A stretch of 64,000 bases of DNA from Macrostomum lignano (taxonomy: Eukaryota), in contig NIVC01000011.1 of the NCBI GenBank assembly GCA_002269645.1, forward strand, positions 1 through 64,000, written 5' to 3'. Both the position numbers and the translations under genes were made by a program. Positions 38,548 to 40,887 of this stretch are shown here, in pieces (the stretch's first letter is position 1; every line of letters starts with the position of its first letter). The notes under the pieces were generated by a model. That model was not told the DNA's origin and did no database searches. It saw only the letters and a program-made list of their open reading frames with translations.

Positions 38548-39098
38548 TCAAAGAAAAAATCCGGAATTTGAATCATCAGCTTCTAAATTAGCGCCACCGA
38601 CCACTTGATGATGCGTTGACGGCTGTTTGGCTGCCTGTTGCAGCATCAGCCGTGTGCTAGCCTGCCTTGATAGACACCTGTAGCCGAACGAGTCATTAAC
38701 CATGCCTAGATTGACTCGTTTACGGAATCGAACGCTACACACAGCCAGAGTGATTGTAGCCGTTGCCAATGACAACAATAGAGCAGCTGTGCCGCTAGTT
38801 AGTGTCCAAAACAATGGTGAACTCATGCAGACACTGTGCTCATTAGCTTTAAATCTCATAGTTGTCAAGGTATTCTTGTCTGTTTTCTTGCTAACCGCCT
38901 CGGTCTCTGTCGATGGTACACCGTTGCTATTGTCCGCAGTTAGGCAGCCACTACTGTTGCCATATTTGCTAGTTGGTCGAAGCTGTCGTTTGCACAGAAT
39001 GCTGCTCACTCCGAATAGGCAGCTGCCTGCGGCACCACCCGGTTCGGTCCAGTATAGCACAGTTTGTAAAGCGTCTCTTTGACTGGTGCCGCTTTTAC
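38548..39098 (-). CDS. Nested gene, exon 2: end of CTLD-like domain, Ser/Thr stalk, transmembrane helix, cytosolic tail
   Basis: Minus-strand CATACAG acceptor (plus CT at 39099-39100), phase 1. YWTEPGGAAGSCLFGVSSILCKR, then TM LFWTLTSGTAALLLSLATATITLAVCSV followed by RFRKR. Stop TGA at 38548-38550. Confidence 0.7.
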
Positions 39099-39247
39099 CT
39101 GTATGGTTGCATAATTAATGAGTATTAATTTGTGTTGTGCATGTTGGCATATTGAATCGAATTTTCTAACAAAACTGACATTTGGGAAGGGTCTTCAATT
39201 GTGTAGGATAAGCTAATAAAAAAAATTATAGTTCATATTAGACGAGT

Positions 39248-39542
39248 GGGCGTAGTCTTAGTGGTCTAAGGTGGCGCTCTGATGTCCCAGCGCCCAGGCT
39301 CGATTCCAAGTGCAGTCACATTAACTTGGGGCTAAATTGGAATCTCGGCTTGGCTCTGCTCGTGCAATTAACGCCCAGCTTGAGGGCCAACCCCCCCCCC
39401 CCCCAACCCCCAAGGCACAGTGAAGTGTACATGCCTTAACTATAAGTAAAGTTAGGGCCGCTGTACACTTCTGTGTGAGTGTGTGCCTGTGCGTATGACT
39501 GCGTACGTATCCGCACGCTTGTGTGCCTGCTCAGGGGAGTCG
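39248..39542 (+). mobile_element. tRNA-derived SINE, family A, copy 1
   Basis: A box TAGTCTTAGTGG, B box GGCTCGATTCC. The body is shared with the minus-strand copies at 47852 and 49356. Confidence 0.85.
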
Positions 39543-40550
39543 GCGGAATGGGCAGTAATGCCTCTCGCCGGTTATGTGACAATGTCGCTTAAAGTGCGCC
39601 AGGGTGCACGCAGCACGCCTGCCACTAAAAAATATTGGGTTAGACGAAGTGACGAAGACAAGAACAGTAGAGCGTGGAGAATAACGAGCACAAAGAATAA
39701 CTGTCTATTTCGTAAATTGATCGAGATTGGTGCTTGACTTTCGGCAATAGATGAAAAGCAAAAAAAGTCATCTTACTTGATATGCTTTATGCCTGCGTGT
39801 GCCAAATCGAATGTTTGTATAGTGTTTCTTTGTATCAACCAATTAATCTATTAATCAAATGGAAACTACAAAAGTTCTTCATTTGGCTATGCCAGCTTTC
39901 AAAAGCTTTTCAAAGATTGATTCTGTCGGTCTAAGTTATACAACTCTTTAGTTAGCTAAGTTCCACTTTTCTACACAACTGAGAGGGGGTAGGCGGGTTC
40001 AGAATAAGCAAGTTTCACTCGCTGACCCATTGATCAATCGAGGTTTAATTTCGTTATGAAACTCTCTTGGGGGGCGGAGGCTGTGGCTGGATGGAGTTTG
40101 CTTTAGTTTGAGTGCTGGATGCTCTCTTTTTATGCACATTTAGTTTGCATATAGGAGTATATAGTTGCATATAAAACGTGGCTTGTATGCGCAGTACTTA
40201 CTAGAGGCACTAGCTACAGTGTTTTCTTTCAAACGGGACTATTAATTAATTAGAAATTTGCCGTCTTCAGCTGCTAGTAGCTGGGGCGTAGTTTCAAGGT
40301 TCATGTATGTACTTAGCTGTCTGCGCAGTTAATTAATAAGGCCTGATTTAATTACGCCTAAAATTCAGTTCATTATGCGAGCTAGCATAAATTAATTCCT
40401 AATTTGTTAGCTTTGTACCGCTTACGTAAAGTAAAGGTTTTGGACCCCAAAATCAATTTTCAATCCCCTGAAGCTGATTAGACTACGTTTTTTAATAGGC
40501 GCTGAATATTACTAGAAGTAGCCAAAAAAGCCTGTTAAAACGTTATTTAC

Positions 40551-40887
40551 CGCTTTGCCGACGCAATGGAAAGCACAACACTTCGCCGCGTTCGATCTCC
40601 GGATAGTCAGTTGTCATTTAAATCTTGCTGCCCAAATAGAATGATATATTATAGGGGAGCTGTTTCCAAACATAGCGTACTTCGGTTGCGTCAACAGGCA
40701 TTAAGCTTTGACTGCGACAAAACTCATCTGAAGCTTTCTGCGAATTGGCTGGTTGATTTTGAAACAGTCGGAATTGAGTATTTGGTAGAGCCGGGTTTAG
40801 CAGTCCTACAAATGAACTATCAGCTAATACAATCGTCGGAATGTTGGTTAACAACAGTGCTTGGAGAATTGTAAATATGGTCTTCAT
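40551..40887 (-). CDS. Nested gene, exon 1: signal peptide plus C-type-lectin-like domain, with an in-frame TAA at 40618-40620
   Basis: ATG at 40887. Hydrophobic N-terminus MKTIFTILQALLLTNIPTIVLA. FRLFQ...ASDEFCRSQSLMPVDATEVRYVWKQL...FYLG follows the CTLD pattern. The frame continues past TAA (MTTDYPEIERGEVLCFPLRRQS) to AGCG|GTAAAT, a phase-1 donor matching exon 2. Confidence 0.7.

Follow-up and report, generated by a model that had tools for sequence, protein, structure and literature searches.

The window analysed here (64,000 nt, positions 1 to 64,000 of the Macrostomum lignano contig NIVC01000011.1) contains a two-exon gene on the minus strand, and its whole transcription unit is located inside a single 8.7-kb intron of a dystrophin-like gene that runs on the opposite strand. 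Coding exon 1 (40887-40551, 337 nt) comprises codons 1-112 and the first base of codon 113, and coding exon 2 (39098-38548, 551 nt) comprises codons 113-295 and the TGA stop codon at 38550-38548. Both are joined in phase across an intron of 1452 nt (39099-40550, minus strand) with the donor G/GTAAAT (GT at 40550-40549) and the acceptor CATACAG/GT (AG at 39100-39099; slashes mark boundaries), yielding a coding sequence of 888 nt (295 codons and TGA). An in-frame TAA is positioned 12 nt 5′ of the ATG of exon 1 (40887). Further upstream, a possible TATA box (TATAAAAA, 40944-40951, minus strand, 57-64 nt 5′ of the ATG) is identical in the paralogous copy described below, and a possible polyadenylation signal (AATAAA, 38378-38383, minus strand) follows 165 nt 3′ of the stop codon. 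An earlier note on this DNA had spliced two minus-strand open reading frames at 40550 and 39099 into an open frame of ~295 codons. The junction and its phase were found as described, but the frame is not open, as codon 90 is a TAA (40618-40620, minus strand), which is directly adjoined by an ATG (40617-40615). This TAA falls between the first and the second of the cysteines cited in the note, and with it three ORF pieces exist at this locus and not two.

The host gene is transcribed from the plus strand. Upstream of the intron at 34235-42976, the exon at 34041-34234 encodes a Pro/Ala-rich hinge behind the last part of the second CH domain and is followed at 34235 by a GTAAGT donor, and behind a polypyrimidine-CAG acceptor the exon at 42977-43795 encodes poly-Q and then spectrin repeats with a match to dystrophin residues 370-570 (7.3e-26). 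Apart from this, the latter exon matched only isolated repeat-1 chains of utrophin and dystrophin at E<=0.01. The CH domain was recognised by Pfam (CH, 2.5e-19), and its best match in the PDB was the utrophin actin-binding domain (1.4e-24), with alpha-actinin and beta-spectrin scoring almost equally. The host match covers the CH domains and the spectrin repeats, the 3′ part of the host, where the C-terminal WW, EF-hand and ZZ domains of a dystrophin would be expected, being located outside both the window and the paralogous locus, and these tandem CH and spectrin-repeat matches to utrophin and dystrophin support the earlier view of a dystrophin-like host that carries the gene antisense in this intron. 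Genes nested antisense in the introns of large host genes are common in animal genomes, and the arrangement at this locus is of the same type, with nothing unusual about it.

The paralog search that had been suggested led to a second copy, ~95% identical to the window gene, on the GenBank contig NIVC01001022.1, in a locus whose collinearity with the window extends over >20 kb (86-97% identity). There, the gene is likewise nested antisense, inside a large CH/spectrin-repeat gene of 4076 aa. This copy carries GAA (Glu) at codon 90, and its whole 295-codon frame is open, the upstream ATG included. The gene that had been called unannotated is, in its paralogous form, already in GenBank as the hypothetical protein PAA73244.1 (BOX15_Mlig032967g1, Mlig032967.g1; UniRef A0A267FJ53), which is 98% identical to the window protein and uses the same splice junction (RRQSG/KSG) and the same stop codon. 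Besides Glu versus stop at codon 90, the two copies differ in five amino acids, four of which are at residues 182-198. Stranded RNA-seq was the basis of the GenBank annotation of this assembly, from which weaker antisense transcripts had been removed (PMC5730564). For most loci, M. lignano possesses ~three paralogous subgenome copies (PMC10733133). Mlig032967 did not occur in the full texts and the supplements of M. lignano expression papers that were searched.

PAA73244.1 was the sole homolog among 5.8 billion clusters, and an exhaustive HMMER search of 1.84 billion representatives with a profile of 233 positions, from which the N-terminal 62 residues were left out, returned nothing beyond it. 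A search of the PDB sequences gave only a chance match to the transmembrane helix (E=1.3). The two-exon gene is found only in M. lignano, already known as an orphan hypothetical protein, and is a real but ordinary flatworm-specific gene. Of the divergent, lineage-specific receptor or adhesion protein proposed before, the lineage specificity agrees with these searches, but a 295-residue product from the window copy does not agree with the premature stop.

The length of an ORF, taken alone, is weak evidence for a gene. Between the coding sequences of the window and the paralog, 21 differences were counted (15 synonymous, 5 non-synonymous, 1 nonsense), distributed over exon 1 (8, 1 and 1, respectively) and exon 2 (7 synonymous and 4 non-synonymous, the latter all in the interval 182-198 mentioned above). 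This corresponds to a pS of 0.073 and a pN of 0.0074, and the resulting pN/pS of 0.10 in the frame of the gene (Fisher p=1e-6) rests on two sequences, so that selection is not assignable to either lineage. For the joined coding sequence, the other two sense frames yielded pN/pS values of 2.7 and 1.9. Divergence from the paralog amounted to 4.6% in the intron and ~5% in the flanks; at the rate of the intron, ~31 non-synonymous changes would be expected, compared with the 5 observed. Moreover, 14 of the 21 differences were at third codon positions (p=0.002). One antisense frame also gives a 15:5 ratio and was ruled out as coding solely by its 13 stops. From the low pN/pS next to this intron divergence, we infer that the frame is protein-coding and under purifying selection. 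A fortuitous ORF within a non-coding antisense transcript of the dystrophin-like gene, with the public protein model as an artefact of automatic ORF calling, would fit the failure to find homologs outside the species, the unrecognised domain, the structure predictions of low confidence (see below) and the many spurious long ORFs elsewhere in the repeat-rich window. Nevertheless, we regard this explanation as very improbable, since the deficit of non-synonymous changes is seen in exactly the frame of the gene, and since these 295 codons continue in phase across the splice junction, with no interruption of the frame in the paralog.

The public model PAA73244.1 starts at Met63 (MPVD...), a start that would drop the signal peptide and the first cysteine, whereas in the DNA of that copy the region encoding the signal peptide is open and conserved. 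Between the two copies, codons 1-62 contain 5 synonymous versus 1 non-synonymous change (p=0.003). As these codons are open and evolve like coding sequence, the public model probably lacks 62 N-terminal codons, including the signal peptide. The start at Met63 also suggests that the mature mRNA may begin 3′ of the ATG at 40887, and, together with the TAA ATG arrangement in the window, it might, though improbably, reflect real signal-less isoforms that arise via spliced-leader trans-splicing or reinitiation.

In a Kyte-Doolittle analysis, two stretches of the 295-residue protein stood out as hydrophobic, residues ~3-22 and 208-235, and no others. The N-terminal one peaks at residues 11-21 and belongs to a signal-peptide-like segment (codons 1-22, MKTIFTILQALLLTNIPTIVLA/DS, 40822-40887, minus strand) with V-L-A at positions -3 to -1, so that the putative cleavage site VLA/DS fits the -3/-1 rule. 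The second one is a predicted transmembrane helix (codons 208-235, LFWTLTSGTAALLLSLATATITLAVCSV, 38731-38814, minus strand), which reaches up to 2.09 in a 19-residue window at residues 217-228, does not differ between the two copies at the protein level (codon 215 carries a synonymous change), and is directly followed by RFRKR (residues 236-240, 38730-38716, minus strand). The tail contains YRCL (codons 252-255, 38671-38682, minus strand), a putative YxxΦ-type motif 17 residues past the helix. Signal peptide, transmembrane helix with RFRKR stop-transfer and the YRCL (YxxL) in the tail had all been pointed out in the note; RFRKR and YRCL are present, and hydropathy supports the signal peptide and the helix; the Ser/Thr stalk described alongside them proved to be a modest enrichment (29% versus 20% overall). 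With an N-terminal hydrophobic segment, one helix and RFRKR, the protein looks like a type I single-pass membrane protein, as judged by hydropathy and simple rules.

In its intact form, as in the paralog, the gene would encode a type I membrane protein of 295 residues. A cleavable signal peptide of ~22 residues would precede an ectodomain of ~185 residues, which has six cysteines and two N-glycosylation sequons that may be glycosylated, and whose membrane-proximal end would be Ser/Thr-rich and less constrained. Behind the single transmembrane helix, presumably anchored by RFRKR, a 60-residue cytoplasmic tail would carry the YxxΦ (YRCL) as a putative sorting motif, a motif type to which clathrin adaptors bind. 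Endolyn/CD164 and proteins with LAMP-type sorting tails are examples of small type I membrane glycoproteins that combine a Ser/Thr-rich stalk with a YxxΦ tail. They have the same layout of signal peptide, glycosylatable ectodomain, helix, basic stop-transfer and short tail with a Tyr motif, which suggests how the protein encoded here may traffic. However, a sequence relationship was not detected and the YRCL is located away from the extreme C-terminus, leaving a functional analogy only. As the most likely working model, we consider a cell-surface glycoprotein that cycles via endocytosis and binds a ligand through a fold not yet recognisable.

For the ectodomain, a compact C-type-lectin-like domain (CTLD) with four cysteines in canonical order had been claimed. 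These cysteines, FCRS (C57), VLCFP (C105), GSCLF (C139) and ILCKR (C148), are indeed present, but the ectodomain has six in total (57, 105, 139, 148, 164 and 203). In CTLDs, four conserved cysteines form the disulfides C1-C4 and C2-C3. The order found here is compatible with a CTLD and the spacing C3-C4 (8) is typical, but C2-C3 (33, compared with the usual 10-15) is long and C1-C2 (47) is short. A highly divergent compact CTLD that lacks the long loop and the Ca2+/sugar motifs, and whose role as a receptor or in adhesion would not involve sugar binding, could account for the canonical C1-C4 order of four of the six cysteines and for their CTLD-like local contexts. The usual CTLD motif is C3-x7-C4-E/K, and the spacing of 8 between C139 and C148, followed by K/R, resembles it. 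The single best local alignment of hhalign sets SDEFCRSQS--LMPVDATEVRYVWKQL on the alpha1/beta1'/alpha2 region of DC-SIGN, and a low-confidence AlphaFold2 model would place a helix over the first cysteine.

The profile searches argue against this assignment. Pfam returned zero families at E<=10, Lectin_C and Xlink included, for the joined peptide and for each exon. With an HMM derived from 10 PDB-validated CTLDs, the ectodomain reached a score of -0.8 bits, not above the median of 2000 shuffled sequences, 979 of which scored as high or higher, and with a Link-module HMM the ectodomain ranked 339 of 2000 shuffles. From hhalign, a probability of 0.11% (E=0.53) was obtained, and the alignment extended over just 25 columns. 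The AlphaFold2 models, with mean pLDDT values of 27 (full protein) and 40 (ectodomain), were too poor to judge, and hence to exclude, the double-loop alpha/beta fold of a CTLD; a Foldseek search of the PDB with this unreliable ectodomain model gave nothing below E=6 and no CTLD among the 9 matches listed, and no CTLD was matched in the PDB sequences either. The motifs WIGL (beta2) and WxWxDG are absent from the translation, which has only FYLG at residues 83-86, and two further cysteines are unaccounted for. None of EPN, QPD and WND is found in the translation, in agreement with the note, and with them the combination for Ca2+-dependent sugar binding (EPN or QPD plus WND) is missing. Compared with the compact CTLD forms (Link module, TSG-6/CD44), the ectodomain is likewise an extracellular Cys-containing domain of similar size, has four cysteines that can be threaded as C1-C4 and shows a short local resemblance over the alpha1-alpha2 segment, but its profile, sequence and fold matches are not significant, its Cys spacing is atypical with two extra Cys, and WIGL, WxWxDG, EPN and WND are missing. 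Taken together, a divergent CTLD appears improbable, and as no test supports it, the C-type-lectin label should not be passed on.

Because of the stop at codon 90, the window copy as written cannot make the 295-residue receptor. The stop is situated 67 nt 5′ of the only exon junction, which makes it most likely that the window copy is redundant and was disabled very recently. It could give rise to no more than a secreted fragment of 89 residues; alternatively, the mRNA might be removed by nonsense-mediated decay, or a signal-less product might be restarted at the ATG right after the stop. Another explanation is that the TAA stems from an error in assembly or sequencing or represents a segregating allele, in which case the window copy would function as well as the paralog. 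TAA and GAA differ in one base only, the frame is otherwise intact and indel-free, and the assembly of this neopolyploid genome has been described as error-prone (PMC10733133). We consider this explanation unlikely, since with ~5% divergence from the paralog at neutral sites a real substitution at codon 90 is unremarkable, since the early loss of one of ~three redundant copies is expected, and since in a protein database look-up neither a gene product of the window copy nor its 89-residue ORF product is on record. In long-read assemblies, residual errors are mostly indels rather than substitutions, which likewise argues against an error. Small introns that would bypass the TAA (donors 40680/40671, acceptors 40628/40597) were inspected by eye and run into a stop or have no plausible acceptor, and the paralog needs none. 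An alternative genetic code with TAA as a sense codon was also rejected, as translation with the standard code is normal for a 3347-codon ORF and for the host exons.

The interpretation of a two-exon M. lignano gene whose intact paralog encodes a type I membrane protein and whose copy in the window is probably disabled appears to us a good deal more credible than not. That the ectodomain is instead a new, extremely divergent member of the compact CTLD/Link group that arose or diverged within Macrostomum, combined with a window copy that is one of three left by the recent duplication of the genome and is caught just as gene loss begins, with one nonsense change in a frame that is otherwise perfectly constrained, seems quite improbable. 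The locus has little relevance outside flatworm genomics, and the useful outcomes are mostly corrections. The disabled copy in the window would illustrate, on a small scale but concretely, how genes begin to be lost among the ~three-fold redundant subgenomes of a recent polyploid. Should orthologs of other Macrostomum species reveal a recognisable fold in the future, the gene could add to the examples of fast-evolving flatworm surface proteins.

The intron of the gene also harbours a dispersed repeat of ~250-350 bp (39276-39632), which is outside the gene product and for which tRNA and Rfam scans of the window gave no match. More copies of this repeat are located in the window at 47852-48084 and 49372-49472, and four are present in the paralogous locus.

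The observation of an earlier note, which had described an unannotated C-type-lectin-like membrane receptor gene lying antisense in a dystrophin intron, is largely right apart from an overlooked stop codon, but the gene is already public as a hypothetical protein, its C-type-lectin reading is unsupported and its interest is low. Exon 1 (40887-40551, minus strand, 337 nt) starts at an ATG at 40887, with an in-frame TAA 12 nt upstream, and ends at the donor G/GTAAAT at 40550; exon 2 (39098-38548, minus strand, 551 nt) follows the acceptor CATACAG/ at 39099 and terminates with a TGA at 38550-38548. 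In the translation of the window's minus strand, the exons join in phase into 295 codons containing all of the motifs that had been quoted. The proposed frame thus holds in its splicing and length, but it is not open in the window: codon 90 is TAA (40620-40618), directly followed by an ATG, and the VLCFP cysteine consequently lies within a 22-codon piece past a stop.

When the joined peptide was searched against 5.8 billion protein clusters, the sole match was PAA73244.1 ('hypothetical protein BOX15_Mlig032967g1', from the flatworm Macrostomum lignano), a 233-residue protein with 98% identity, the identical splice junction (RRQSG/KSGTSQ), a first residue corresponding to Met63 of the joined frame and Glu at the position of the window's stop. 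This model belongs to L001, a locus on contig NIVC01001022.1 of the same assembly (GCA_002269645.1), where the nested gene lies inside a 4076-residue gene of the opposite strand, the upstream ATG is present and all 295 codons are open. Window and L001 are collinear over >20 kb at 86-97% identity, which makes L001 a paralog of the region, distinct from the window sequence itself. The M. lignano genome became polyploid recently and contains most loci in about three paralogous versions, with a mean SNP difference of ~2% (PMC10733133). Given this three-fold redundancy, the simplest reading is that one copy, the window's, lost its function very recently; that the codon-90 TAA, at which the public protein has Glu, is instead an assembly error or an allele appears unlikely. 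A transcript of the window copy would give an 89-residue secreted fragment and, judged from the position of the stop 67 nt upstream of the sole exon junction, might be degraded by nonsense-mediated decay; reinitiation at the adjoining ATG might, speculatively, yield a product without the signal peptide.

The GenBank annotation of the assembly was derived from stranded RNA-seq with StringTie/TACO and a de novo transcriptome, dropped antisense transcripts expressed at least five-fold below the opposite strand, and took its ORFs from TransDecoder (PMC5730564). Because weak antisense transcripts were removed from this stranded dataset, the existence of PAA73244.1 is indirect evidence for a minus-strand spliced transcript, at least at the paralogous copy. 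No expression data turned up in the literature for the gene's identifier. In an older model of a different assembly (UniRef A0A1I8JHV7, 2521 aa), the nested gene's coding sequence is joined to an antisense translation of dystrophin exons and to reverse-transcriptase-like sequence; this model, named 'Peptidase A1 domain-containing protein', is a chimeric annotation artefact.

The host intron, 34235-42976, had been placed correctly, with a GTAAGT donor at 34235 and a polypyrimidine-CAG acceptor. On the plus strand, an exon with tandem CH domains (Pfam 2.5e-19) ends at 33400, a short exon (34041-34234) carries the end of the CH2 domain and a Pro/Ala hinge, and the next exon spans 42977-43795. The best PDB match of the CH exon was the utrophin actin-binding region (1.4e-24), followed closely by alpha-actinin, beta-spectrin and dystrophin; exon 42977-43795 matched dystrophin residues 370-570 (7.3e-26), and its other matches at E<=0.01 were only utrophin and dystrophin repeat 1. 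Because of these matches, the host is, as judged from its N-terminal exons, dystrophin/utrophin-like, the C-terminal WW/EF/ZZ region lying outside the sequence covered. Against the protein database, the host exons 32814-34234 or 42977-43795 had a 297-residue ENA protein (35% identity) as sole match; the 4076-aa host protein of L001 is a gene call on record, yet it is absent from those matches.

Comparison of the two copies shows that the nested gene is a real gene, antisense within the dystrophin-like intron. Their coding sequences differ at 21 positions (15 synonymous, 5 non-synonymous and 1 nonsense), which by the Nei-Gojobori method gives, for two copies, pS = 0.073, pN = 0.0074 and a ratio of 0.10 (Fisher p = 1e-6), compared with ratios of 2.7 and 1.9 in the remaining two sense frames. 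Copy-to-copy divergence is 4.6% in the intron and about 5% in the flanks; the intron's rate predicts about 31 non-synonymous changes, and 5 are observed. Four of these five fall at residues 182-198, the membrane-proximal stretch, and no amino-acid change separates the copies in the cysteine-bearing ectodomain, the helix or the tail. Third codon positions hold 14 of the 21 differences (p = 0.002). One antisense frame of the joined CDS (opposite strand, offset 1) mimics the ratio because third positions coincide, with the same 15:5 split and a pN/pS of 0.11; only its 13 stops tell the coding strand, which calls for caution with pN/pS on nested antisense genes.

Ahead of the public start, 62 codons (window 40887-40702; L001 9815-10000) are open in L001 DNA and carry 5 synonymous versus 1 non-synonymous difference (p = 0.003). 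They too evolved as coding, and PAA73244.1 is therefore probably 5'-truncated, without its signal peptide. Trans-splicing might determine where the nested gene's mRNA begins: the M. lignano spliced leader has ATG as its last three bases, and YTNCAG is the preferred acceptor (PMC8629364). Acceptor-like minus-strand sequences are CTTCAG (40935-40930), which precedes the ATG at 40887, and TCGCAG (40718-40713), just before Met63, which departs from YTNCAG at its second position.

The hydropathy of the joined protein has exactly two hydrophobic segments, residues ~3-22 and 208-235. The first ends V-L-A/D-S (A-L-A in the paralog), fitting a signal-peptidase site, and RFRKR comes after the second. 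Hydropathy and sequence rules thus back the proposed signal peptide and transmembrane helix, and the product is probably a type I membrane protein whose ectodomain spans ~185 residues and has six cysteines (57, 105, 139, 148, 164, 203) and two sequons (N80, N160). The Ser/Thr stalk is present as a stretch before the membrane, but its enrichment is only modest (29%). In the 60-residue tail, YRCL was found as described, at 252-255, 17 residues from the helix, and, as a putative adaptor-binding site, matches the pattern YxxΦ. An ITAM was ruled out, there being just one YxxL, as was a consensus ITIM, given Phe at -2.

Every test of the claimed C-type-lectin-like domain (CTLD) was negative or uninformative. 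Pfam at E<=10 returned no family for the joined peptide or either exon, and a PDB sequence search with the peptide returned nothing relevant. A CTLD profile was built from ten members checked against PDB entries (DC-SIGN, MBP-A, E-selectin, CD69, tetranectin, lithostathine, NKG2D, ASGR1, SP-D and LOX-1), and TSG-6 and CD44 served for a Link-module profile (the CD44 sequence was confirmed in PDB; TSG-6 was not among the matches listed). Run in HMMER without any filters, the CTLD profile gave the ectodomain -0.8 bits, a score equalled or exceeded by 979 of 2000 shuffles, and the Link profile gave it -0.4 bits (rank 339 of 2000). hhalign (probability 0.11%, E = 0.53) aligned only 25 residues, SDEFCRSQS--LMPVDATEVRYVWKQL, onto the alpha1-alpha2 region; this is the resemblance noticed earlier, and it is not above chance. 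AlphaFold2, run from the two available sequences, gave models too poor to speak for or against the fold (mean pLDDT 27 over the full protein, 40 over the ectodomain), and Foldseek of this pLDDT-40 model against PDB gave nothing below E = 6 and no CTLD. The order of the cysteines and the C3-C4 distance would fit a compact CTLD; against it stand a C2-C3 spacing of 33 residues, the lack of WIGL and WxWxDG, and two left-over cysteines. A CTLD is quite improbable. Searched exhaustively with HMMER, 1.84 billion representative proteins yielded the known paralog only, and tblastn found no further copies in the window or L001. The gene is taxonomically restricted (orphan) as far as these databases reach, other Macrostomum transcriptomes perhaps not being included.

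A dispersed ~250-350 bp repeat with a G-run of variable length sits within the intron of both copies of the nested gene and also in further introns of the host (window 39276-39632, 47852-48084 and 49372-49472; L001 1168-1300, 2464-2714, 9029-9353 and 11090-11509); tRNA and Rfam matches were sought and none found, and the element is possibly SINE- or MITE-like. The same host intron holds a 30-nt minisatellite (41359-42805, 48 copies, 91% match) that gives rise, on either strand and in several frames, to spurious ORFs 385-490 codons long. Dense simple repeats surround the host 5' exons (30256-31524, 32124-32828, 34269-35475 and 36458-37256), comprising a 21/42-nt minisatellite, (TAGT)n of ~176 copies and CT-rich 15-nt repeats, and (TGTC)n of ~315 copies begins 35 nt past the host donor; all produce long false ORFs. 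Adjoining the dystrophin-like gene, the plus-strand ORF 1510-11553, 3347 codons uninterrupted with a dynein-related AAA ATPase domain (AAA_5, AAA, AAA_7) at residues ~956-1065, looks like a giant intronless ATPase gene. ORF 833-1630 overlaps it in another frame, which suggests an upstream exon or a frameshift.
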